Notes under the pieces: generated by a model
Seen by the model: only the letters and a program-made list of their open reading frames with translations
What the model was told of the DNA's origin: nothing
The model's database searches: none
In this document: positions 1 through 51,840 of the stretch, in pieces
Position numbering within the stretch: position 1 is the stretch's first letter
Layout: every line of letters begins with the position of its first letter
Position numbers and translations under genes: made by a program
Assembly (NCBI GenBank): GCA_040285825.1
Contig: JAUPSS010000005.1
Location: 248,001 to 312,000 of the forward strand
Direction of reading: 5' to 3'
Length of the DNA stretch: 64,000 nt
Origin: Eukaryota sp. TZLM1-RC
Lineage: Eukaryota; Protista; Metamonada: BaSk clade

Positions 1-1005
1 AATGGGACGATAATCATTGAACCAAGATTTCCTCTACAAAATCTTGATCTGCTTGCCGTCTAGCTAAAGCTTCTCTTATTCGATTGAAAAACTGTGGTGA
101 TCTATTAATAATGGCAAATTGAATCCGTGAACGCCATAAAAATATCAAATCTTTTCATTGTTTTTTCTTGCACCATTTTTTGGAAATCATCCAAAAAAGT
201 TTCTGCTTCAACTGTTAATCTTCCATTTATCGAAAATGGGAAAGTAATAAAAACCAGCTGTGTATTTCTATCGACATTAGCCTCTTCAATATCTTTATCA
301 TATTTTCTATGTTTCTCTTTTGTTTTAAAATCCAGAACAGCCACAGGATTAAGTTTTCTTCCGTGAACCAAAGTATCGTTTACAACATTACATGAGACAA
401 AGTCAACAATAGCTTCAGAATTATCAATCCAATCACAGTATACATCACCTCTATCATCAGAACCAAAATTATTCAGAGAAAGTGTTTCCTTCAGCAGGGG
501 CTCTTTGATACACGATATTCTTGCAGTTTGAGCCATATTGAAAACAGTGTCTCTAACAGCATCATGTAATGAAGAACGATAAGTTATCAATTTAGAACAA
601 TTCAGAGCATGGCGCAAAGTGAGTTGAGGTGAATTCGAACAAATACATTTTTCTTTTGATAATAATTGATTAATGGGGATATTCAAATATAATCTAATTT
701 TTGTTACAAATGCTTCATTAGTGGCACACAATCCAAATCTTCGTGGTACAATGGTTACAAAAAGTGAAGAATCTGATGACTTACTTTCACAAACACCCTT
801 TTCCATTAACAATGAGTGAAGATCTTGATTTAAAACAGCCGAGCTGTATATATTATCATAAAGATCATTTTCATACCTTCCAGTCAATCGTTTCTGTAAT
901 GTTCGAAGAGTGTACTTCAAATTTAAAACATTCTTTTCTGGAATATTGCCATTGAATGATTGGGGAAAGCATCGACCCCATTTTTCTGTATCAATTTTTG
1001 AAAAT
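1..1005 (-). mobile_element. CRE-like RLE non-LTR retrotransposon, family A, 3' fragment (runs off window start)
   Basis: ORF 105..1031 has a CxC..H..C zinc motif, HDAVRD, and RGD..D..K..KY restriction-like endonuclease motifs. Near-identical to 7164-8180 but frameshifted near the C-terminus. Confidence 0.85.
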
Positions 1006-4396: not shown

Positions 4397-6527
4397 CTAC
4401 AAATACTTTTTAAACCAGCCATCTTCATGGAAAATAATGTCCATCCAATGAAGCCAGTCAAGAGGATGAGTGACCCAATGGGATCCTCGTTCGAAGAAGA
4501 CCAATCTAGAGGGAACTCCACGCCTCTGTAAACCTTGGAATAACATCATGTTTTGGTGTTTGTCAATTCGGAAATCATTATCACCGTGAATTAAAAGCAT
4601 GGGAGTATTGATGTCATTAATATAATTGATTGGTGAACATTTCTTGTAACTTTCAGGCTCAACAGGGTCCATTGGAGAACCTCCAAATTCATGTTCAGCA
4701 AAGAAAAGCTAGAGTTAGAGCAAGAAAAACTTGACAAACCTCTTCAGTAGTGTAATAAAATGAAGTGAAATCTACCAATCCACAGTGAGAGACGGCAGCC
4801 TTGAACTTACCAGTGTTAACCAAAAAGTTGGTGGAGAAACCTCCATAAGAAGCACCCATGATACCAATGCGGGAACCATCAATCCAATCAAACTTCTTGA
4901 TAGTTTCCGTTAAGAATTCCATATCATCAACCATCAAGGGTTCATTACACCATCTACCAGAAACAGCGTCAGTAAACTCTGTTGAATAACCAGTGCTTCC
5001 ACGGGGATTGACTAAAATGATAGGATAATGGGCAGCAAAAACAGCTACTGGCCAACGATAAGAAAAGGGACTGCCCCAGAAACCTTGGGGACCCCCATGG
5101 AGGGTGAGGATAGCAGGGTGTTCTTGTCCTTTATCTAAATGGGGAGAAGAGAGGATCCATCCTTGAACATCGGTCCCATCAGAGGTGGTGAGCCACATTT
5201 CCTCAATGATTGTTTTGTCAATTTCCGATAAGAATTTAGTATTGACATGGGTAACTTGGGTGGATTCAGCGGTCTTGGTATTAATAACAAAGACTTCATT
5301 TGGTCTATTCCAATCACTGGACAACACGTAAGCATTATCATCAACAACAGTGACGATTCCGAGAACTGAGCCATTTTCAAATGAAATAGGTTCCCCGAAA
5401 GGACGGTCAATTGGCATGCTGAATAATCGTTGGTGACCTCTATCAGTGGCAGTGAAATAAATAACATTGCCATCAACGTAATAACTATCAGGAGACTTAG
5501 TCCAAGCGTCCAAGAAGCGACGAACTTGACCAGTTTCAAGATCCAACATTACCAAGGTGTTCTTATCGGCTTCCATTTGCTCACGACTCATTGTCAAATA
5601 GAACAACTTCTTTCCGTCAGCAGAGAAAGAAGGTTGCTGCTTACGAGCCCTGTTCTGACAAGTAATACATTGATGGGGTTTGGTTTGGTTTACGGGGGCC
5701 ATAAAGATGTTCCAATCAGTGTTCCAGGCATAGTCTTGTGTATCTAATTGATAATTGAGCACGATTTTGGGTTCCGTGGGGTGGAAATTAAAAGCTTCAG
5801 CCCCGCTGAAAGGGCGAGGACCACAATTGGCATTAATGCCATGCATCACATTAAATGGTTTTCCCTTGAGTTTAAACACACCTCTGTGAAACTGAATCTC
5901 TTGGGTGTAAACGTGATCATAAAGGGGTCCATGCTGCAGATCGCTACTTCTCCATTCACTCCAATGGCGAATCATTAGTTTATCGTACTCTCTGGTTTTG
6001 TGCTTGAGGTTGGATCTGCGGTCGATTTCCTTCCGGGTTTCGTCCATGTCCAAATTGGCAAAAGTACTTGCGGAGAAAGCAATCATTTTCTTATTGGGAT
6101 GAAATTTGAGATTGGAAACATCAAGGGGATAATCAGACACCTGGCGATGTTCAGAGGCTTCATGGTCACTGACAACAGTGTACCAGATTTGCGAAGACCC
6201 AGATTTGGTGGATACATAGAAGAGGGCGGCCTGTTGACCATTCATATGTATGATGTTGAGGTCCCCATAAGAAACACCAACCTCTGGGCGAATAATTTCG
6301 TAAACACGGGTGTTGGACAAGTCAATGCCGTAGACGCCAGTAGCGAAAGCTTCAGCTTTGTGGTCCCAATGACTGCTGGTATAAGCCATGAACCTGTTGG
6401 ATCCAGGTACATCATGAACAGCAACAGAACCAAGTCTTCCAAGATCTATTACGTCTTTGGTCTCCCAAGGACGTGCAGTCACGTTGAGAAGAACCAACGA
6501 AAGAAACACTAGAACAAATTGATGCAT
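4397..6527 (-). CDS. Secreted S9 family (Dpp5-like/acylaminoacyl) serine peptidase; exons 6527-4740 and 4708-4397, about 699 aa
   Basis: Signal peptide, beta-propeller region, HGGPQG, GASYGG nucleophile, HGDNDFR and GSHW. Removing a 31-nt intron joins the two ORFs in frame (TTEE|LFFAEHEFGGSP). Confidence 0.9.
4709..4739 (-). other. 31-nt spliceosomal intron
   Basis: GTTTGT...CTAACTCTAG, phase 0; restores the catalytic Asp/His exon. Confidence 0.9.
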
Positions 6528-9640: not shown

Positions 9641-10140
9641 AGAAATAAACAAGAAAAAGGCTGAAATGGAGAGGAAAAATTAGTTCTTTGTTTTTTGTTG
9701 TATTTATTATTTTGCAATAAAAATTTGTAATTTTTTTGAACGTAATTCCCAATTTTTACTAATTCTTGGACAACACAATAATTTTCAACAAACAACCGGT
9801 TTGTTATTCAAATGTTTACAAACAGAATGAAAAAGAGTCCAGTTGAATAGAATTTAAAAGTTTCACTGACCATTTGGCTTTCATGTGTGTGTCACAATGG
9901 AGCAGGTTTGGCAATTTTTCTAAAACACTACACCTTAATTTGGTTAGAAACAAAAAAGATAATGCTGATACATTAGTTTATTTGCAGCGAAAACAATGAC
10001 AAAATATGGGACAAATACCAGTAAAATGACGCAATACGGAAATGTATTTTTTTCCATTACGGTGTGTCTTTTTGACTTTGTCGAATAAGATGTGTTTAGT
10101 GGAGAAGAATTTATCACCCCTTTCTTTCGTTTCACTTAAG

Positions 10141-10262
10141 GTGTGTTCGAGTTGCTTTTATTCATGTGATGATCATCCATGCTCTTGGTCCGTGTTTCTG
10201 AACTCTGATGAGAGAGCGTTCATCTCTGATTCTTTCTTCTTTTGAGAACGAGCTAATCTCAG
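10141..10262 (+). other. Predicted 122-nt 5'-UTR intron of eEF2 (snoRNA host)
   Basis: AAG|GTGTGT donor; CTAAT-CTC-AG acceptor with the same spacing as the 4709-4739 intron, ending 4 nt before the ATG. Confidence 0.72.
10162..10233 (+). ncRNA. Box C/D snoRNA, U18/snR18 type
   Basis: Box C GTGATGA 10166-10172; guide TTGGTCCGTGTTT 10185-10197 complementary to conserved LSU rRNA AAACACGGACCAA; D' CTGA 10198-10201; C' TGATGA 10206-10211; D CTGA 10226-10229. Confidence 0.88.
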
Positions 10263-10266
10263 AACA

Positions 10267-12798
10267 ATGCCCAACTTTACCAAGGAACAAATGAGATCCA
10301 TTATGGATCACCCTGAGCGTATCAGAAACATTTCCGTCATTGCTCATGTCGATCACGGAAAATCTACTCTTACTGACTCCCTCATTGCCAAGGCTGGTAT
10401 TATTGCTTCTGCCAAAGCCGGTGATACTCGTTTTACCGATACCCGTCAAGATGAACAGGATCGTGGTATTACTATCAAATCCACTGGTGTTTCTCTCTAC
10501 TATGAAGTGTCTGAATCAGTTGTTTATAACCGTGATCCAACTGCCGAAGACAAAAACATTGGTCATTTGATCAATCTTATTGATTCTCCTGGTCATGTTG
10601 ATTTCTCCTCTGAGGTATCTGCCGCACTTCGTGTAACTGATGGTGCTCTTGTCGTTGTTGACGCTATCTCTGGTGTCTCTGTTCAGACAGAAACCGTCCT
10701 TCGTCAAGCCCTCGCTGAACGTGTCAAACCTGTACTCATGCTTAACAAAATGGATCGTGTCCTTCTTGAATTGAAGCAAGAACCCGAAGAAGCTTACCAA
10801 TCCTTTGCTCGCACTGTCGAAAACACCAATGTTTTGATTGCCACTTATCTTGACGAGGCTCTTGGTGATGTCATGGTTGATCCCTCAAACGGTACTGTTG
10901 CTTTTGGTTCCGGTCTCCATGGATGGGGCTTCACTCTCACTCACTTTGCCAACATGTATGCTTCCAAGTTCGGTATTGAAAGATCAAAACTTGTAAACCG
11001 TCTTTGGGGTGACAACTTCTTTGATTCTCCAGCCAAGAAATGGAAGAATAGACCAGTTGGTGATGATGGAAAACCATTGAAAAGAGCCTTTGTTAGTTTC
11101 GTTCTTGATCCCATTTATAAGCTCTTCGATTCTGTCATGAACAATCAAGCTGACAAAGTCAACAAAATGCTCAAAGTTTTGGGCATTAAGCTTACTCAAG
11201 AAGAACGTGATCAACAAGAAAAGAAGCTTTTAAAAACCATTATGCAAAGATTCTTGCCAGCTGCCGAAGCCCTATTGGAAATGATTGTTGTTCATCTTCC
11301 TTCTCCCAAGTTTGCCCAAAACTACAGAGCTGAAACTCTGTACACTGGTCCTGCTGATGACGAAATTTGCCAATCCATTCGCAGATGTGATCCTGAAGGT
11401 CCTCTCATGATGTACGTATCCAAAATGGTTCCCACCTCCGATAAGGGTCGTTTCTATGCTTTTGGTCGTGTTTTCTCTGGTACAATCAAATCTGGTCAAA
11501 AGGTCCGTATTCTTGGTGCCAACTACGAATTTGGTGGCAAGACTGATCTGTACCATAAAAACATTCAACGTTGTGTCCTCATGATGGGTAAATCTGTCGA
11601 AGCTGTCAATGATGTTCCATGTGGTAACACTGTTGCTCTTGTTGGTATTGATCAGTTCTTGACCAAGAATGGTACCTTAACCGACAGTGATCAAGCACAC
11701 CCCATCCGTGCCATGAAATTCTCTGTTTCTCCCGTTGTCCGTGTAGCTGTTGAACCCAAGAACGCTGCTGAATTACCTAAATTGGTCGAAGGTCTCAAAC
11801 GTTTGTCAAAGTCCGATCCTTGTGTCCAATGTTATACTGAAGAATCTGGTGAACATATCATTGCTGGTGCCGGTGAACTCCATCTTGAAATTTGTCTCAA
11901 GGATCTTCAAGAAGATCATGCTGGTATCCAACTCCGTGTTACCGATCCAGTTGTATCATACAGGGAAACTGTCACTGCTGAATCCGAAGTCGCTCTTTCC
12001 AAATCCCCCAACAAACATAACAGAATCTTTATGGTTGGTAGACCACTCGAAGAAGGACTTCCTGAAGCCATTGAAGATGGAAAGGTTGGTATGAGAGATG
12101 AACCCAAGGTCAGGGCTCGTTATCTCACTGACAATTTCGAATGGGACAATGATGAAGCTCGTCGTATTTGGGCAATTGGTCCAGGTCTTGATGGAACCAA
12201 TATGATCGTTGATACCTCCAAGGGTGTCCAATATCTTAATGAAATCAAGGACTCCGTTGTTGCTGCTTTCGGATGGGCCACTCGTGAAGGTGTTCTCACT
12301 GACGAATATATGAGAGGGTGCCGTTACGACATTAATGATGTTACCCTTCATGCTGATGCTATTCATAGAGGGGGTGGTCAAATCGTTCCCACTGCTCGCC
12401 GTGTCATCTATGCTTGCCAATTGATGTCCGAACCAAGGCTTATGGAACCTGTTTATCTTGTCGATATTCAAGCACCCGATACCGCCATGGGTGGAATTTA
12501 CTCTGTTCTCAATCGTCGCAGAGGACATGTCATTGCTGAGGAACAACGTCCTGGTACTCCTCTCTATGCTATCAAGGCCTACCTTCCCGTCGCTGAATCC
12601 TTTGGTTTTACCGCCGATCTCCGTTCGAATACATCTGGTCAAGCTTTCCCTCAATGTGTCTTTGATCATTATCAACTCGTAGGTGGAAGTCCATTCGAAG
12701 AAAACACCAAACAATGGGAAATTGTTAGAGGTGTCCGTACACGTAAAGGATTGGATCCTCAAATTCCTGGATTGGACAAGTTCTTTGATAGACTTTAA
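10267..12798 (+). CDS. EEF2: Eukaryotic translation elongation factor 2
   Basis: [31 protein letters not shown], and diphthamide motif [12 protein letters not shown]; 843 aa; strong codon bias. Confidence 0.99.
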
Positions 12799-18074: not shown

Positions 18075-19480
18075 GAGAAAAGAAGAAACAACAAACTTGA
18101 GCTTGGGTAAATAAATGTACTAATGAAAGCTGTTGACTAAAGGTAATAGCAATGGTGATTCGGCGTAAAATTAATGACGTGGCGTGACGTGGCATTGGTT
18201 CTTTTGAGGATTGGTGTGTGATCGGAGGCGGAGCTCAATGGGTACAGACGTGATGAACGGGCATGAACTAAGGAGCAGTGGAGAGGGCAAACATTCCTTG
18301 TGCAGTAAATCTGTTACAAAGTTCTCGGCAAAGAGTGGTCCGTATTGTGACGGCAAAGAGGAGAGACCAATGGCACATCTATAAACCCTTGACAAGACGT
18401 TGATCAAAAAACATGTAAGTTTTGTGGGTCCTCATGAAAAGAGAAAACAAAAACAAGGGTGTACTTTACCAAATGATTTAATTTGTCACAGCAAGAGTGT
18501 TGTTACGCTTTCCCATATTTTAAACTGTAAGTATTTCATAACTTATCGCTCAATTGTTCATGACTCAGTTCGTGATCAATTATATGCTATGTGCAAAAGT
18601 TTCAATATAGAGGCATTTATTGAGTCATTAGTACGTAAGCTGTCTTCAGATCAAACTGATGATTCCTTTGGTAAAAGAAGGGCAGATTTAGTAGCTCCAG
18701 GGATCGATGGTGTTCTCAATGTTGTAGATGTTGTCTCAGTTGATGTTTGCAAAAATTCTGCTGCTCGTTTAGTGTATTCCGCTGATTTGCCGTTATCTAA
18801 CGCCGAAAAAAAGAAGACAAAAAATATGAAGAATCTTTGGCACAGTTAGGTAGAGTGGAACATGTGAAATATCAGTTTGTGCCGTTTACAGTTTCTCTTT
18901 TTGGCAATATTGGACCTTCAGGGTTGCCCTTTTTTGAAAATTTCAAAAAAGTGTTACTGAATACGTCTGGTAAAACAAGAAATTCCACTTTCTGGTTAAA
19001 TAGAATTGTTTTTTGCATTTTCAAGTCTATTCCAACAATGATTTCAAAGGCACTTTTAGCTATTGGTGTAGAATATGAACGTAATGCTGTGAGTAGGTTT
19101 AGTAATAGTGACGCTTGTTTGGAGGATATAGAATTCTAGATGAGTTTTTTTATCTCAAAAAATTAAATAAATGAAAAAAAGGCAAAAAAAACAAGGGTTG
19201 ATTTGCGGTTTCGAAAAAAACAATATCGATTAAACTTCTGTTCCACACTAAATGAACTGTCCTCATGAAAGAGAAAACAAAAACAAGAGTCTGGTTGATT
19301 TGCGATTTCTAAATTCAGGATGCTCTCAAATTCAATTTGCTAAATTTTATCGATTACCACGGTATTTTTATCTGATTAAAGAAGCAATAGCGAGAAAACA
19401 AGCAGATAAAGATTTTGTAGAAGAACATTTGGTTCACTGAATTGACGCCCATTAGTTCTCATTTAATTTTATTGAATAAT
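18075..19480 (+). mobile_element. Candidate bipartite non-autonomous retroelement, copy 1 (non-coding head 18075-18460, family A tail to about 19480), interrupted by family D
   Basis: Head aligns with 29828-30174. Tail EAIARKQADKDFVEEHLVH* matches the family A C-terminus. Confidence 0.55.
18461..19186 (+). mobile_element. CRE-like family D 3' fragment with ~12-bp TSD
   Basis: Zinc motif and RLE ending ..CLEDIEF*. AAAAACAAGGGT at 18449-18460 and 19187-19198. Close copy at 62940-63770. Confidence 0.85.
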
Positions 19481-20318: not shown

Positions 20319-23300
20319 ATGTCAGACATCTCCCAACCAGATATCTCTGACTCTAATCCACCACTTAATATGCAGCAGGTACCAGCATCACGTACACATG
20401 ATATAGAGGGCAACGAGGCAACGGACCCGGATCCCACCTCCCCCTCCCTTAATGTAGACGAAGATGAAAGAGTGGACGAGGTCCCTCCATCTTCAACAAC
20501 AGAAGAGGTAACGAGAACGGACCCGGCTCCCTCTCCCCTCAGGAAAAAAGTAACAGATGAGGTTACGAGAACGGGCCCGGCTCCCTCTCCCCTCAGGAAA
20601 AAAGTAACAGATGAGGTTACGAGAACGGACCCGGCTCCCTCTCCCCTCAAAGCAATGGAAGAGGCAACGAGAACGGACCCGGCTCCCTCTCCCCTCCCAA
20701 TTCTAGAACCTGTCTCAAAGGGAACGGATGGAGATCCCACCTTAGACACGTCTTCCCCATTAGGAGAATATGAAGAAATTCAATCTCAACTAGATGAAAT
20801 GGAGGGAGAAGACGACTCTTCTGAGGGGTTCTACAGGTTATTAAGAGAGGACGCGGAGGCTTACCTCGAACCAACAGATTTCTGTCTGTTCGAGCAACTT
20901 CCCCCTTTATGGAGTTACGTTCAAAAAAGAGGCAGAAACGTTGGTTTCCAGACCCTCGGAATGATTGGGGATACCCAAAAGGTATTGGAAATTCCCCTCA
21001 ATGAAAGGAATGAACTCATAAAGGCACTCGATAAATTGAGTAGAGAGACATTCGGGCGTAACGCAGAACGCCGCCCCAGAATCTCTGGAATGGACAAGAG
21101 AATCAATGAATTGATGTCTCTTCCCATCAAAGATAGATTGGATTGGAAGGCCTCCTTCCTAGATCAATACGGCAGGAGAATAAGGTTTCTCTCCATCGAA
21201 CAGAGAAGTAGGACCGACTCGGAAGACATCCTACAATCCAAATTGCCTGCCTGGTTTGATCCTAACTTTGATACGGAAATCCAAAATTACACGGAGCTGA
21301 CAGAGGGTGCTCCCACATATTTTAGGGAATTTATGGAGCAGGAGGATAGTAGTGAACAAGACAAGCTTGAACCAGTAACCCCAGTAGGGGAACCAGTAGG
21401 GGTTTGATGCAGACGCTCTAAATAACATTCATACGGAACGATCAGCTGTATCCACGTATAGGAGCCGTCCTAACAACTACACCCAACAACATGGTAACTC
21501 GTTCACAAAACAACGAGAGTTTAGACAATGGGTAACGGGAGATCCATCCACATCTCTCCACCTTCCCAAACTGCCTGTTGTAGCCCCTATAATTTCTGAA
21601 AAAAGCCAACCAATACAGGTCTGCTCTATCGACAGCATACCCGATCATGTTCCAACAGTGAACGTCCCGGAACCTGTAACAAGACAAAACGTTGCACCTC
21701 AGGAAGAACCAACTTCCTCTCAACCCATGGAAAGTGAATTTGGAGAAGACATTGAGTTGAACGGGCCAGTCGTTGGAGAAACGGCTCCTCCTCAACCCTC
21801 AGTAAGAGACTCTTCTTCCGATAGACCTACGCGTATTGAGGACCTACAATCCTCAAGAAGAGCTATTGACATGAGCATAGCTAGTAGCCTTCATAGACAG
21901 ATTGATCCACGGTCTAAGGATATCGACTATAAAAGACCTCGATTATCCGCTGATGACCCTATTAACAAAATGTCATAGCTTTTCTTTTAAAATATCAAAC
22001 TTGGGATAAATACGGGCGAAAGATAGCTAATAGAAGCTTCGAAGCCCCAGGTCAATCAGATTGGACCAGAGCCTTTATGATAGCTACCCAGCTATTTGGA
22101 GAAGGCCAAGCAGAAATAACCCAAGATAGGATTAAAGATCTCCCCAAACATATACGCGACGAGATCACCAGGGATACAACACAGCCTTTGGTAAGGATTG
22201 ATCCAGCTATAACAGATAAGCTCGGACCCCCAATCCACCATTATGATTTATTTAGGAGCATGATGATGAGCACTTGCCCCACAGGAATATCCAGCATGAT
22301 CGACCCTAGCCTTCTATCTAGATGGCAGAGTCAAGGTTTACTCGGTGTTGATTATACCGACGCCGACGTCATGGTATTTCTGTTAAAAAGAACGCAATTC
22401 ACATCATATCATGAGGCTTGTACAGCTCTAATGAAGCCTAGAATAAATTGGAGGAAAATCCACAATAGGCATGAGGCTGACAACGAGTTTGGTCGTTATG
22501 TAGAAGATTTTGGAGACGTCTTGAGAATGACCACCTACATGACCGACCTAACCATCCCCGATTTAATTAGAGGAAGCAGTGGGTTGATAACCAGATCTCC
22601 CGCTCTAATAGCCGAGTACTTCCTTATGGGTCTGGATAACTTTGCTATATCAAGCGAACTCCTCCCAGTATGGACTAGGGAATCCTTGTGGGACTCACCG
22701 AACAGAACAACTCTACTCGATTTGATATCGACAACGAGAAGACATTTCCTCGCTTGGTGTTACACAGCAGGAAACAAGCCCACAATGGATGTACTAAGGA
22801 ACAGGGCTAACGAAGAAGATATTCCTTTGGGACTCACGGCAATGAGAACTTACTCAAGAGGAGTAACACCATCAGCCCAAGCTCCAACAAAACGAGCAAG
22901 ACGATCAGGTGGAAAGTCACGAAAAACCCCTCAACACAAATACATCCCTGAAAAGCATGAACGAGAAGGGTCAAAATTCTGTACATTCTGCAGCAACGTC
23001 GAAGGTAACAATCCTGTTGGCCACACTGTATTCGAATGCAAAGATCCTCGTTGCGCTAGAAGCAGAGTTCCCAAAGAAGAAAGATTCAGATTAGGAGAAC
23101 AGGAGGCGCCTGCTAGTAGAGGCAGTGTAGAAAGGGGCCGAGGTGGCCGTGGTAGACGTGTACATAGATTCAAATTTAGAGGCCGTGGAGGCCGTTATAG
23201 AGGTCATAAAGGAAGAGGTCAGTACAGACCTATACATAACATAAACACAACAGAGGACATATCATCAAACGCATCCCCTTCTGAGTCAAAACCGACCCGT

Positions 23301-24018
23301 TCGAGTACGGTTCCTCACAGACGGATCAACAACAGCAACCGGAACAGCAGGACAGGCAACTTTCCTAATCGGGTACATATCAACGCAATCAATCACAACC
23401 AATCAACAACCGATTTAGGAAACCCAGTCAACAACTTTCCAACAGCTCAACAAAATCTTTTAATTCCTCTACAAATTCACCAAACCAGCTCTGATATCAA
23501 TAGCATTTTTGATATTAATTCTACGGTTAGTGAAAACCACGTCAGGTCCCAGCGTTCTCCATTTCTAAGACTGGAGATATCAATAAATGATATTAAAATG
23601 ATTGCGACTATAGATTCGGCTGCGTTTTTGTTCAGTTATTACTGCAGATTTAGCTGAACAATGCCATATGTCAATCAATAGCAAGGATACTATTAAGTTC
23701 TTACCAGCTAATAACGTATCCACAAAATCGCTAGGGAGTGCAACTGGTATTCTGTCGTTCAACGTAGGAAGCATTGCGCAACAAGTTCACTATAAACATA
23801 CTCTTCCCATAATCCCGGGTTCGAACAAATTATTAATAGGGACAGACATGTTAAAAGCACTTGGGCTTCAGACGGATGATGGTCTTTTCATTAGATTAGA
23901 CAAAGAACACCGCACTTTGCTAAATGCAGAATCAGAATTCGACTCTAGGATCGCTCAACATTCGATTGGGAACTTAGATAACCAATCACCAAGTCTTCTG
24001 ATTTTGAGGAGCAATTAG
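20319..24018 (+). pseudogene. Gypsy gag-protease region broken into several ORFs
   Basis: Acidic repeat-bearing N-terminus; CTFC-x10-H-x4-C knuckle; RG-rich tract; protease ATIDSAA..LLIGTDML split by a frameshift. Confidence 0.75.
20505..20697 (+). repeat. Coding tandem repeat, about 3.7 units of 48-54 bp (EVTRTDPAPSPL...)
   Basis: ACGAGAACGG(A/G)CCCGGCTCCCTCTCCCCTC occurs 4 times. Confidence 0.92.
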
Positions 24019-24212
24019 CAAGATCTGGATGTGAGATAAATTTAGATGATAGTAATAATAAATTAAAATTAACGAGTCTACTAAAATTATTCAGCGATGT
24101 TTTTAGTGAAACTCCTAATAGAAAAGGAATCGATTGTAATCCTCTAACAATCCCCTTTAGAGATGAGAATGCTATAGTACATAAACCTGCTAGACGGTTA
24201 AATCCCAGCAAA

Positions 24213-27137
24213 ATGGAAATAGCAAACAAAATATTTGATGAACTGATCGAAATGGGCTATGCAGTTGAATCTAATTATAAATTCAGCTCTCCTATTGTCT
24301 TAGTTATATACCCTGACGGCAAAAAACCCAGGTTAACTGGAGACTTCAGCGGTAAAGATGGAGTTAAGGCCCACACGATTTCAGTAGAGCCTAATCTACC
24401 TAGGATTAGTGATATATTAGAATTTTTGAGTAGAGCAAATTACATCGCCACGCTTGATTTACCAAAAGCTTTCTGGCAGATGAATGTTGCTGAGAAGGAT
24501 ATTGAGAAAACATCAATTTCAATCCCTGGAAGATCAATTATGTTTAAAAGAGCTTGCTTCGGATTAAAGAACATCCCAGCAGTTTTTCAAAATGTAATGA
24601 TGGAAATATTCCAAATTGATGGCGTTTTTATATATATTGATGATATCATAATAGTTGGAACGACTTTCGAAGAATTCTATAAGAGATTACAAAGAGTCCT
24701 CCAATGCGCCAGAAATAGACGTGTAAATATAGGCTTACGTAAATGTAAATTCGTAACATCAAAACACCCTATCGACATTTTAGGAAGTACCTTCCAGGAT
24801 AAAACTAGATTTATAAGTAAGAAAAAAATCGAAGCCTTGATGAGAATCCCTAGACCAAAAACAGTGAAAGAAGTTCGCTCATTGGTAGGATCCATCAATT
24901 ATATTAGAGATTGGCTTCCAGGTATATCTGAATTAATTGCTCCAATTAACGAGCTAATTAAAGGAAAACCCAGAATAATTAAATGGACTTGCAAGCATGA
25001 CGATTACTTAAAACAAATAAAAGACCTAATAGTAAACCACATGCCCCTTGAATTACCAGCTCCGGGCAAGCGAGTATTGATAAGTACTGACGCTTCAGAT
25101 GTAGCAGTAGGAGGTGTTATTTGGCAAGAAATTGAACCCTACTCCCCTGCAGGAACCCCGCTAAATAAAAGGAAAGTGAAACCTTTGTCATTCTATAGTA
25201 GATTACTTACAGAAACACAAAGAAAATGGTCCACTTTACAAAAAGAATTATACGCAATACTTCTGATTTTAACTGAAAGTTGTTTAGAAAGCTACTTGTT
25301 AACTAGACATTTAACAATTTTCACAGATCATAAAAACATTGCATTCCTGGCTACAGCCCCAGAGAAAAATAGAATTGTAAAGAGATGGCTGCCGATACTA
25401 TCTGAATTCGACTTTGACATAGTCCACGAACCTGGTGAAGACAACCATTGGGCAGATATGTTATCGAGGAATATTGATTTGGATCAAAACGAGGAAACTC
25501 CTTCTATTTGTAGTATAAATATACCAGACACTTTACTTTCAAATTACGAGATACCTCCACTAGACGATGATTCTGATTCGGATCTTGAAGACATCCCTTC
25601 AATCTCATCTCTAAGTAGACACCAAGACCTACCTATTTTTTCTTCTTGGCTGACTAAGATAAGATCTGAACAACAAATAGCCAAAAACAACAACGACTCT
25701 TTATTTGATAACGCAATTCTAGATGTAAACACTCAAATTTGGAAAAATAATAAAAACAAAATTTTGATTCCAAAGAGCCTCAGAAAACAGGCACTATTAT
25801 TAATACATGGTTTGGTTCAATCTGGTCACCCCAGCAAAAACGATAGTTTACACAAACTGTCCAAAAGCGATTTCTACTGGCCCAATATGAGAAATTACCT
25901 TATTAATCATGTCAAAAGATGCCCAACTTGTCAAAAAACGGCTCCAGTTAAAAGATCAAAAACACCTTCCACTGGATCTTTATGGGCAGATCGTCCTTTT
26001 GCCAGATTAAATGTCGATACAATTGGACCCCTAAATTCTGACAACGAAGGAAATAAATATCTATTAGTATTTGTAGACTCTTTTACTGGATATACAATTT
26101 TAGTCCCTCTAAAAGAACTCAATGCCTTAGAAACCGCAGATGCCTTGATTTGGAATGTTTGCGCTATCTTCGGCATACCTATGTTAATTCATAGTGATAA
26201 TGGACCTGAGTTCGCCAATGAGACTTTCAAAATAGTGTGTAACAGATTAGCGATTGAGATGAGTAACTCAATTCCCCACTATTCAGAAAGTAATGGACTT
26301 GTAGAACGTAAACATAGAGACGTTCTTCAATGCTTAAGGAAACTATTAATAGATTTCAATGATTACGGAAATTGGTCTACATACGTACCTGTATCCCAAC
26401 TATTAATAAATTCTACTAAAAGCAGAAAAACTGGTTTTACCCCATACGAACTCATGTTCGGTTCTTCGATTAGTCCAAGAACAGACCCTGCTAATATATT
26501 AGGAAATTTATCCAAATTTGAAACTAATATCCCTTTATTAGATGACTTCAAAATGAAAAACACTCGTCTACAAGAAAAAAGGGAAGAAGCAGAGCGTCAC
26601 CAAACATTAAATACTCCGTCTTCAGTAGATAATACTAATTCGTGTTTTATAGTATTTAATATTGGTGACTACGTCTTACGTAAAACCAAGCAAAATAATA
26701 AATTGCATGGATCTTGGAATGGACCATTTTTAGTTATTGACCTTCCTTCCAAATCCACTTTATTATTGAAGAATCTTACTACTGGCACAGAATTAAAAGC
26801 TGCCAAGAAAGATTGCAAAATCTATAACGCAGAAAATCCACAGGACATTGAATTCCTCAAGGCAGTCGCTGCAGGCGATTCCGAAAAACACGTTATAGAG
26901 AAAATCCTCTCAGAATACCACTCTGATTCAGGTAGTTTCTGTACTGTTCAATGGTTTGGCGGTGAGACAACAGAAGAGCCACTCCATTCGGTTAGACACT
27001 CAGAAGCTTATAAGTTATTTAGTAAGGATAACAAGAAAATTGGTAAACGTACCACTAGTCGACGACAAGGTACCTCCAATGAGTCTACGCCTTCTAAGAA
27101 GCCTAGACGCAGTAATAGAATTAGGAAGAGGAGCTAA
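24213..27137 (+). CDS. Gypsy pol: RT, RNase H, integrase, chromodomain-like C-terminus
   Basis: LDLPKAFWQ, YIDD, TDAS, HHCC, D..DNG..E, and IEKIL..VQWFGGETTEEP. Confidence 0.95.
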   Translation: MEIANKIFDELIEMGYAVESNYKFSSPIVLVIYPDGKKPRLTGDFSGKDGVKAHTISVEPNLPRISDILEFLSRANYIATLDLPKAFWQMNVAEKDIEKTSISIPGRSIMFKRACFGLKNIPAVFQNVMMEIFQIDGVFIYIDDIIIVGTTFEEFYKRLQRVLQCARNRRVNIGLRKCKFVTSKHPIDILGSTFQDKTRFISKKKIEALMRIPRPKTVKEVRSLVGSINYIRDWLPGISELIAPINELIKGKPRIIKWTCKHDDYLKQIKDLIVNHMPLELPAPGKRVLISTDASDVAVGGVIWQEIEPYSPAGTPLNKRKVKPLSFYSRLLTETQRKWSTLQKELYAILLILTESCLESYLLTRHLTIFTDHKNIAFLATAPEKNRIVKRWLPILSEFDFDIVHEPGEDNHWADMLSRNIDLDQNEETPSICSINIPDTLLSNYEIPPLDDDSDSDLEDIPSISSLSRHQDLPIFSSWLTKIRSEQQIAKNNNDSLFDNAILDVNTQIWKNNKNKILIPKSLRKQALLLIHGLVQSGHPSKNDSLHKLSKSDFYWPNMRNYLINHVKRCPTCQKTAPVKRSKTPSTGSLWADRPFARLNVDTIGPLNSDNEGNKYLLVFVDSFTGYTILVPLKELNALETADALIWNVCAIFGIPMLIHSDNGPEFANETFKIVCNRLAIEMSNSIPHYSESNGLVERKHRDVLQCLRKLLIDFNDYGNWSTYVPVSQLLINSTKSRKTGFTPYELMFGSSISPRTDPANILGNLSKFETNIPLLDDFKMKNTRLQEKREEAERHQTLNTPSSVDNTNSCFIVFNIGDYVLRKTKQNNKLHGSWNGPFLVIDLPSKSTLLLKNLTTGTELKAAKKDCKIYNAENPQDIEFLKAVAAGDSEKHVIEKILSEYHSDSGSFCTVQWFGGETTEEPLHSVRHSEAYKLFSKDNKKIGKRTTSRRQGTSNESTPSKKPRRSNRIRKRS

Positions 27138-28096: not shown

Positions 28097-29820
28097 TGTT
28101 GACATAATAAACAGAAAAAGGATAAGAATTTTTATTAAATTCACTGGCCGTCACTAGTAAAGTCTATACTAGACTAATTGTCTACAGTACAACACTACCT
28201 TTCCCCTCTCTTAGATCTCATACAACAGCTATAAGAATTCACTGCAAAGGGTTTAGTCTTAGATTTAGAATCGGAATTCACTTTCCGTTTTCTGGAAGTG
28301 CGAGGGCCAAGGGTACGCAAATATGATTGGTATGCCTCAGTGCTTTTGACGTCAGTAACTGGGACAGACAATGTCCCGCCGCCATACCAAACTGCGGTAC
28401 AATAAGGAACTTTATTATTATTCGAGTCTATAAGATCGAAGTGATCTGTAATCTTAATAATTATTGATTCCTCCATATCACCGGCAGCAATGTTGTTATG
28501 CCAATCTATATCTTCTTTGGGGAAGTCAGAGAGGTGTAGTTTACAATGATTACTTGCCATAGACATCGACCCAGTGACAAGATTCTTGGGTAATAAACTT
28601 TTATTGGATTTAACTTCAATGAGAAAAGGGCCAGCGAAGCAACCATGGAGTTTTCCATTAGTCTTTAATACCAAAACTAAGTCACCTTTATTAAAAGGTT
28701 TCTTATGTTTGTTAAGTTCAGGCAGTTGATGAGCTTGCCTGAGCTCTGCCTCTTTTTTCTTTTTTGAAATCCTTTCAAGTTTTGCTTCAAGATCTTAAAC
28801 CAAGGGAATATTAAAACTAGCTGATTTTATTAGTTCAAACATATCACTAGGATCAGCTCTAGGGCTGTGATCGCTACCAAACATTAAATTGTAGGGTGAA
28901 TGACCAGTAACTTTACTAATAGTTGAATAAATTTGAAGTTGTACAATTGGGATATATTCGCTCCAATTGCTGTAATCCCCAGAGTCCACCAAAATCTTTC
29001 TTAGACTTTGTAAAATGTCTCTGTGACGTCCTTTTACTAGACCGTTGCTTTGTGCAAAGCCAGTTAGTGAACGACTTACTTCAATATTTAATAGATCGCA
29101 TAACCCTTTGAAAATGGCATTTGCAAATTCAATACCATTGTCACTGTGAATTAACAGTGGGATACCAAAAACTGATTACTACACTCCATAAAAGGTGATT
29201 AATTGCCTCCACTGCATTCAATTTCTCTACAGGGCAAATGATCGTATACCTAGTGAACGAATCTACAAAAACCATTATCATCCTGTTGTAATGGTCCAAT
29301 AGTGTCTGTGTTTAATCGTGCAAAGGACGATCAGCCCAAAGAGAGCCAGATGATTGAATGAACTGTAGTACGTATTACTAACGTATTCATTACCAGTACG
29401 TTGACCGGACTCCATAAAAACTATGCCATTCTGCGATAACCTTACTTTCGATCATAACTCCCAAATATAAAGGGTCCTATCCGAAAAACATTGATCTAAC
29501 AAAGTCGTACTGATGAACAGGTGGATCATATTTGGTGATCGTTGTAAATGCTTTGGTGGGTCCATCGCTATTCCTAACCGTTTTTGACAAATTGCCAAAG
29601 TTAAGTACGAAGTCGAAGATCTTCTTCGCATCAAACGCTTCGTTTAACTGACTTAGACATCTGAGTTTGTCGTCGATTTTTTTCCTCAATTTCTCCTCGT
29701 GTGTTACAGGTGTTCTGTAAAGACCGAGGGTGTCGACAAGAGAATCTCTAGGAACATTCGTTTCTAGGGGTGGCGTAGGTTTAGTGGGATTATCTACAGA
29801 TGCTTGTGTAGGAGTTACTT
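28097..29820 (-). mobile_element. Second, internally deleted Gypsy (gag remnant, integrase/chromo remnant, ~98-bp 3' LTR at 28097-28194)
   Basis: YDPPVHQYDF resembles gag GPPIHHYDL; IHSDNG, GHSPYNLMFG, KLHGCFAGPF, AAGD; purine tract GAGAGGGGAAAGGTAG then TGTTGTA. Confidence 0.85.
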
Positions 29821-33890: not shown

Positions 33891-33955
33891 TGAAAACATA
33901 AGAGATTCAGAATATTGCAGAATTAACATTCCCAAATTCTGTCTCCTGAATTAGT

Positions 33956-34026
33956 TTGATTCATTTCAACTATATCACCACTAATCTTAACAGCATTACA
34001 ACTTTTTGTGATATTAGCCGATGTCC
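33956..34026 (+). promoter_or_regulatory. Shared promoter/leader module upstream of NSE1, including ATGTCC
   Basis: Homologous to 35953-36032 (minus strand) and 9442-9521. Confidence 0.65.
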
Positions 34027-50790: not shown

Positions 50791-51840
50791 CGTTGAAGAA
50801 ATGATCGCGTCTACTTGATGCACAATTTTATATGCCTCACAGGGAAGCGACGAGATCGAAAACCATAACCGAACAATGAAGAGAAAAAGTTAAAGAAAAA
50901 AGAAAGTAGTTCTGGTCACTTGAATATAATTGAATCAAATTTGAGCCTTAAGTCTAAAGTTAACTCAATACCATCTGTAATGAACTGTTGCAAACCCTGG
51001 TTTTCCATAGGTTGATGCGTGTATGAATTGAGATGATTACACAAAAATGGCTAAAAGGTCACATGTAGGAGAACTTACAAAAGGTGCTGCTGGCGTTGAA
51101 GTTGCTGTAATGCTGTTGAGTGTTTTCTGCTGTAGGGATCTTTCTGCTTGTTCTGTGTTTTATTAATATGTTATTAGATTTTTTTTCAGCGTTTTTGATA
51201 CATTTTTCATTTTTGAGCACAATTTGTGATAAGCTTTGTAATATTCCTTCCATTTTTTTAAATTCAATCTCTTTAAGCAAAATCTTCTGATTTCAATAGG
51301 TAATTTTAAATTTGCAGACCTTTACCATTTCCTGATTGTTCTAATTGAGACAATGGTTATTCAAATCAAAAACTTGTCTGGTAATGAAGAAATTTTTCCC
51401 CAGAGTGTTTCTTAACAGAAGGAAGAATTGAACAAGGCTTATGTCAATTTTATTGGGCTTTGTTATTATAGTGCAATTATAAAACATTACCAATACAAAT
51501 TGTAATAGTCAGTTTAACCTAAAGAATCATGTTGATGAAACAATTTACAAGCATGACCATCTGTTATGTTACAATATTTTCTTGAACTTTTGAATCAGCG
51601 ACATAGAAAAACGCAAGTTCATTGTTGGAATAGCTGATATAACTCACTAACAAGACAAAACTCAAACCTCCAAAGCTGTTGTTCAGAATTGATTTACATT
51701 AACCATAATCAGGTGATCAGACCAATAGCAGAAAAGGTAAGAGAAATGGCAACAGAAGAGTTCACTTTGGGATTTCATATCGAGAGCATAATGATTTTCT
51801 GAATTACTCTTTCAGACTCTTTCAGACAACATTTATAAGA

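Follow-up and report, generated by a model that had tools for sequence, protein, structure and literature searches.

The eEF2 gene of TZLM1-RC, which we take to be Skoliomonas litria, lies on the plus strand of the 64-kb window analysed here (the whole stretch of DNA, from JAUPSS010000005.1 of assembly GCA_040285825.1) as an uninterrupted ORF of 843 aa, on record once, and the sequence 5′ of its start codon carries a box C/D snoRNA of the U18 family within what we predict to be an intron of the 5′ UTR. A protein search placed the full-length eEF2 of GEM-RC1 (85%) and TZLM3-RCL (82%; hereafter RCL) closest to that of S. litria, and these two sister-species loci (L001 for GEM-RC1, L002 for RCL) were used for comparison. 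S. litria is a free-living metamonad of the BaSk clade, the sister of Fornicata (PMC11316075). The features that the following sections draw on, all on the plus strand, are:

10117-10140 (+): predicted first exon of eEF2, a CCC-led, pyrimidine-rich (TOP-like) leader, from aligned leaders
10141-10262 (+): predicted 122-nt spliceosomal intron of the eEF2 5′ UTR
10141-10146 (+): predicted 5′ splice site GTGTGT after the exon end AAG, fitting the GTNTGY of short introns
10161-10233 (+): box C/D snoRNA of about 70 nt, homologue of SNORD18/snR18 (U18), Rfam RF00093
10166-10172 (+): box C, GTGATGA
10184-10197 (+): D′ antisense element against the LSU site of yeast 25S A649, from surrogate rDNAs
10185-10197 (+): D′ guide TTGGTCCGTGTTT, whose pairing reaches C10184, with a G·U pair added at 10183
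10198-10201 (+): box D′, CTGA
10206-10211 (+): box C′, TGATGA
10212-10225 (+): D-side segment of 14 nt, able to pair internally with 10179-10184
10226-10229 (+): box D, CTGA
10230-10243 (+): pyrimidine tract 5′ of the branch point; in a rival reading, an alternative eEF2 start region
10253-10262 (+): CTAATCTCAG, a predicted 3′ splice site fused to the branch point, with branch A 10256 placed at −7 as in the control introns
10267-12798 (+): eEF2 coding sequence, an ORF without introns, single copy in the protein collection

The first-pass annotation had described the gene as otherwise intronless, which the unbroken ORF bears out, and had placed it in a genome with almost no introns, which is true only in part: the S. 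litria genome is intron-poor, with the housekeeping ORFs in the window mostly uninterrupted, but it is not almost intronless, having short introns of 29-31 nt. The window also holds mobile elements, namely a broken fragment of a CRE/RLE-type non-LTR element with a zinc knuckle and an endonuclease region at 18400-19139 (+), and a Ty3/gypsy-like LTR element at 20319-27137 (+) that comprises pieces of gag along with a pol ORF for RT-RNaseH-integrase. The CRE/RLE-type family is dispersed over the S. litria assembly in 69 match clusters, of which some comprise dozens of members, and the same search returned no matches outside that assembly.

The snoRNA and its predicted rRNA target

Boxes C, D′, C′ and D follow one another with consensus sequences at 10166-10229, spanning 64 nt from box C to box D, and every landmark position given by the first-pass annotation proved exact. 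The C..D′..C′ pattern had a single occurrence in the window and none in 100 shuffles, the 16-mer composed of guide and box D′ had an expectation of 1.6e-5 in 128 kb, and Rfam SNORD18 (RF00093, clan CL00047), the top ncRNA match of the window, aligned over the full length of its model (1-71/71) to 10161-10233 with 32.6 bits and E-values of 2.7e-4 locally and 0.034 window-wide; together, these observations argue that the snoRNA call is not a product of chance. The proposed check by an Rfam search for SNORD18 hence returned a full-length match, though one under the family's gathering score of 41 bits, a level that nothing reached, as is to be expected in a divergent lineage. The U18/snR18 identity is borne out by this match, by the perfect boxes and by a guide identical to the Rfam consensus, and as far as sequence can tell 10161-10233 is confirmed as a divergent SNORD18/snR18 C/D snoRNA. 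Elsewhere in the window, at 33903-33987 (-), a weak match to Rfam SNORD96 (29.8 bits, E 0.15) without good boxes is probably a chance one.

Aligning the snoRNA to the SNORD18 model revealed no terminal 5′/3′ stem, with 3 of 4 terminal pairs being non-canonical. Because intronic C/D snoRNAs without a terminal stem exist, its absence does not exclude membership of the C/D class. A near copy of box C's own reverse complement (TCATC) lies directly 3′ of box C, within 10166-10177, and TCATC also lies directly 5′ of box D, such that these copies could act as alternative pairing partners for box C in naked RNA.

U18 is a LECA snoRNA family (PMC3511168), and approximately 70 distinct metagenome homologues, selected by the guide plus D′ pattern, carried a guide and box D′ identical to those of the S. 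litria copy, whereas their D-side segment was variable. Loci that were possibly human or other vertebrate (L005, L007, L012, L021, L026, L050, L059 and L083) were excluded from this set, and vertebrate-looking U18 rows (L084, L086, L095, L104 and L120) were set aside. A single viral contig that matched the LSU pattern was a chance match.

The target of the D′ guide was evaluated against 15 surrogate eukaryotic rDNAs selected for carrying the site, after exclusion of two high-GC contigs (L139 and L173, possibly human/vertebrate); S. litria rDNA was absent from the CRE-like ORF region of the window and from three further S. litria loci. The antisense element before box D′ is complementary to the LSU Am649/Am1313 site, with 14 Watson-Crick pairs and one G·U pair in these surrogates, and the D′+5 position, T10193, lies opposite the target A of the surrogate LSU that is equivalent to yeast 25S Am649, just as the D′+5 rule had been used to predict before. 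Am649 is a known target of snR18 in yeast (10.1101/2024.08.07.607065). An inserted antisense fragment of rDNA was rejected as the source of this complementarity, as the sequence runs on into box D′ after the guide and a full set of C/D boxes surrounds it.

The segment in front of box D is probably not a guide. The first-pass annotation could name no target for it, and the surrogate rRNAs likewise offered no supported site: no match of at least 10 bp recurred at one site across them, and the top recurring match consisted of 8 pairs, one of them G·U, to a conserved LSU sequence, GGAUGAAC, some 480-600 nt downstream of the Am649 site. That match is only a lead as a D-side target. It recurs at the same LSU position in 12 of the 15 surrogate rDNAs, and the segment sits as a 14-nt spacer between canonical C′ and D boxes, both of which speak for a second functional guide, perhaps directed at the G in the LSU GGAUGAAC sequence, or at an snRNA or tRNA. 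We nonetheless judge such a function unlikely, with 8 pairs falling short of the usual 10 or more, longer matches never recurring at one site across species, the segment not being conserved among U18 homologues, and its own pairing with the spacer after box C (10179-10184) reaching -6.9 kcal/mol, a stability that 6% of shuffles equalled.

The predicted intron of the eEF2 5′ UTR

Splice signals were read against four S. litria control introns, found in genes for an S9 peptidase (31 nt; window 4709-4739, minus strand), RPL19 (29 and 31 nt; L125 941-969 and about 804-834, minus strand, with its leader at 974-1002) and SMC (29 nt). Intron ends were located by reading-frame tests and the spliced genes were scanned exon by exon; in the S9 peptidase, whose intron has a fused branch point/acceptor, the Pfam match covers profile positions 2-110 on one side of the intron and continues exactly on the other side with 112-209. 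All four controls have a GTNTGY donor and an A at −7, counted from the final G, and together with four annotated introns of the sister species the branch A stands at −7 in 8 of 8 control introns from three Skoliomonas genomes. The candidate eEF2 intron follows this Skoliomonas consensus with a GTNTGY donor and a branch A at −7 fused to YAG. It departs from the controls in the G at +3 of its donor, where the four S. litria introns have T or A, and in its length of 122 nt, about four times the 29-31 nt usual for the genome.

Comparing leaders revealed that the CCC-pyrimidine motif precedes the ATG by 31 nt in GEM-RC1 eEF2, by 25 nt in RCL eEF2 and by 29 nt in S. litria RPL19, and that in S. litria eEF2 it lies 150 nt 5′ of the ATG in the unspliced sequence and 28 nt once 10141-10262 is removed. 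Within the window, the motif has one occurrence in 128 kb. We infer that eEF2 transcription starts near 10115-10120. The motif is common to S. litria RPL19 and the eEF2 genes of all three Skoliomonas species, where it is possibly an initiator or a 5′TOP element of translation genes.

Left unspliced, the eEF2 leader holds four upstream ATGs, one of which is out of frame and overlaps the ORF. That the interval from leader to box C should hold a donor, and the interval from box D to the ATG an acceptor, both by chance, has a probability of 4e-4 when computed from window densities and of 1.7e-3 when local shuffles are used. The 5′-UTR intron predicted by the first-pass annotation thus gains from the leader position, from the splice consensus of the organism's own genome and from the removal of upstream ATGs. 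With the low probability of chance placement added, these lines favour an intron, and 10141-10262 is very probably an intron of the eEF2 5′ UTR. Two other stretches of the window look intron-like: one of 125 nt at 50954-51078 (-), which is bounded much as an intron would be (GTAAGT ... TTAACTTTAG), encloses a further intron-like unit of 42 nt and has neither C/D boxes nor a clear host gene, and one of 26 nt at 28330-28355 (+), GTATGC ... TTGACGTCAG, within transposon debris, which is possibly a chance occurrence.

The geometry of the candidate intron is compact. The donor lies 25 nt from box C, box D lies 33 nt from the acceptor, and the acceptor is predicted to end 4 nt upstream of the ATG at 10267. 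The spacing of about 27 nt between box D and the branch point that had been noted earlier measured exactly 27 nt to A10256, against an optimum of approximately 50 nt between snoRNA and branch point in mammals (PMC8162545). An external stem between the intron flanks was no better than in shuffles (22% as stable), and folding of the whole intron gave z = +1.2. In the long introns of diplomonads and parabasalids, folding cuts the distance from donor to acceptor to about 25-45 nt (PMC6679479); in the S. litria intron, closing the C/D core leaves flanks that sum to 58 nt. Assembly of the snoRNP may in this way help the spliceosome to handle a 122-nt intron.

Possible routes of expression and origin of the predicted intron

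A real but non-intronic snoRNA would be made from its own start, or from a dicistronic ncRNA-ORF precursor of the Giardia kind cut by nucleases, with eEF2 starting after box D. Giardia ncRNAs are indeed mono- or dicistronic, including ncRNA with a downstream ORF (PMC3510501), and the pyrimidine tract at 10230-10243 would, at 24-37 nt from the ATG, give a leader of normal length. That tract, however, does not have the CCC start common to the four leaders, and the consensus donor after the leader and the perfect branch point/acceptor would have to be there by chance, at about 0.2% or less. The 12-nt 3′ processing motif of Giardia, furthermore, had no match near 10229-10262, its count in the window being at chance level, which speaks against a Giardia-type ncRNA unit. 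We therefore hold non-intronic expression to be very improbable. We would say the same of a spliced intron in which the U18 copy rides along as a passenger, either non-functional or redundant, and yields little mature snoRNA: the spacing of 27 nt between box D and branch A, as compared with ~50 nt in mammals (PMC8162545), and the want of either a terminal or a significant external stem are what one might expect of a passenger, but four perfect boxes and an intact guide suggest purifying selection, making this a highly doubtful reading.

As for how the intron came to be there, the first-pass annotation had suggested that it persists in an intron-poor genome to produce the snoRNA, a suggestion that the sister species do not support. 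The eEF2 introns of GEM-RC1 follow CDS nt 18 and 82 (L001 10019-10048 and 10113-10143) and that of RCL follows CDS nt 6 (L002 10007-10037); neither gene has a UTR intron at the S. litria position, and neither has a U18 within 10 kb of eEF2 (22 kb around the gene searched). None of the metagenomic U18 loci had U18 beside eEF2 either. Protein searches brought up no eEF2 from Barthelona, a result that carries no weight as to its absence. Because the sister eEF2 loci are without U18 and have their introns at other positions, the simplest and most likely reading is that the intron arose by gain or relocation in the S. litria lineage. The eEF2 introns of the three Skoliomonas species all differ in position and are confined to the 80 nt or so next to the ATG, a pattern suggestive of rapid turnover of introns at 5′ ends.

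Retention of an ancestral eEF2 5′-UTR intron through massive intron loss, as the source of U18, strikes us as rather improbable. Introns that carry snoRNAs do resist loss in yeasts, where they are retained in intron-poor species (PMC4202332), and the S. litria eEF2 CDS is without introns while its sister species keep one or two. The eEF2 tree, moreover, leaves the branching order of the three Skoliomonas unresolved, with pairwise identity favouring S. litria + GEM-RC1, such that two independent losses may explain the pattern in place of a gain. Set against this are the missing U18 and the differently placed introns at the sister loci, and a genome that, though poor in introns, is not almost intronless. 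These observations are better explained by the gain of a snoRNA-intron cassette in this one lineage than by the persistence of an ancient intron.

LECA snoRNAs are mobile among broadly expressed hosts (PMC3511168). As to how such a gain could come about, we offer only tentatively the idea of a mobile or duplicable cassette of ~120 nt (donor, snoRNA and branch point/acceptor), of which a complete copy entered the 5′ UTR of eEF2 after the species split, with collapse into a snoRNP aiding splicing and coupling eEF2 expression to snoRNP biogenesis. If this somewhat unlikely scenario is true, the copy would be a recent, snoRNA-carried intron gain in an intron-poor metamonad. A spliceosome tuned to ~30-nt introns may then cope because snoRNP assembly collapses the oversized intron, and eEF2 expression, through the removal of the upstream ATGs, would be coupled to snoRNP biogenesis.

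The explanation that we prefer, and consider likely as a whole, is that of a spliced U18 intron acquired in the S. litria lineage. The eEF2 pre-mRNA would start at the CCC-pyrimidine leader (about 10117) with a first exon of ~24 nt, and the 122-nt intron, of U2 type and with its branch point fused to the acceptor, would be removed 4 nt before the ATG. Debranching of the lariat followed by exonuclease trimming would release the ~70-nt U18 snoRNA, its ends protected by Snu13, Nop56, Nop58 and fibrillarin, and its D′ guide would direct 2′-O-methylation of the LSU A equivalent to yeast A649. Translation of eEF2 would depend on splicing, because the intron holds the four upstream ATGs including the one overlapping the ORF. 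The compact snoRNA-intron unit of ~120 nt would have been acquired lineage-specifically by a highly expressed translation-factor gene, in the manner of host switching or 'constrained drift'. Counting against this explanation are the sub-threshold Rfam score, the G at +3, the 27-nt spacing, the lack of stems and the second pyrimidine tract 24-37 nt before the ATG.

Known systems and significance

Intronic C/D snoRNAs in translation-factor genes, host switching of U18 and 5′-UTR introns are all already known. Yeast U18 (snR18) resides in the intron of EFB1, encoding eEF1Bα (10.1101/2024.08.07.607065; PMC9351541), and chicken U18 in introns 2, 5 and 6 of RPL4, with U37 in intron 6 of EEF2 (PMC2653536), in agreement with the yeast EFB1 and vertebrate RPL4 hosts given by the first-pass annotation (10.1101/2024.08.07.607065; PMC2653536 for chicken). 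Yeast snR18 resembles the S. litria snoRNA in family, D′ guide, Am649 target and having one snoRNA per intron, as well as in an elongation-factor host and an intron-poor genome; S. litria differs in that the host is eEF2 and that the intron lies in the 5′ UTR, is only 122 nt long, has a fused branch point/acceptor and spaces its donor 25 nt from box C and box D 27 nt from the branch point. Vertebrate SNORD18A/B/C in RPL4 are likewise intronic U18 copies in a gene of the translation machinery, and SNORD37 (U37) shows EEF2 already serving as a snoRNA host, as S. litria eEF2 would; vertebrates have ~50 nt to the branch point (PMC8162545) as opposed to 27 nt in S. litria. No report of U18 paired with eEF2 was found in the searchable literature.

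Closer relatives offer partial parallels. The GlsR series of Giardia and its Trichomonas counterparts are, like the S. litria snoRNA, metamonad C/D guides for rRNA 2′-O-methylation, and the introns of these organisms have the same style of fused branch point/3′ splice site. Their C/D snoRNAs, however, come from mono- or dicistronic units and carry a 3′ processing motif of 12 nt (PMC3510501) that the S. litria snoRNA lacks at its end, and Giardia and Trichomonas were considered highly unlikely to have intronic snoRNAs (PMC3228867). In Spironucleus vortens, a 5′-UTR intron has been verified in the translation gene Rps15 (PMC6679479); like the one predicted in S. litria eEF2, it lies just 5′ of the ATG behind a very short first exon. 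The long introns of diplomonads and parabasalids contain plain stem-loops (PMC6679479), whereas that of S. litria contains a snoRNA and has no significant external stem. The BaSk genome paper makes no mention of snoRNAs (PMC11316075). What is new within the searchable literature is the lineage, the pairing of U18 with eEF2 and the compact spacing; a new mechanism is not shown.

As predicted here, the locus brings a protein-coding gene of Metamonada into the range of intron-encoded snoRNA expression. With it come a deep-branching U18 and a host for which no report of U18 was found, in keeping with snoRNAs still being mobile. The locus can further serve as a compact test case for two questions: how a spliceosome of ~30-nt introns, with a fixed distance from branch point to AG, accommodates snoRNP assembly with only 27 nt left to the branch point, and whether new introns can arise from snoRNA-intron units.
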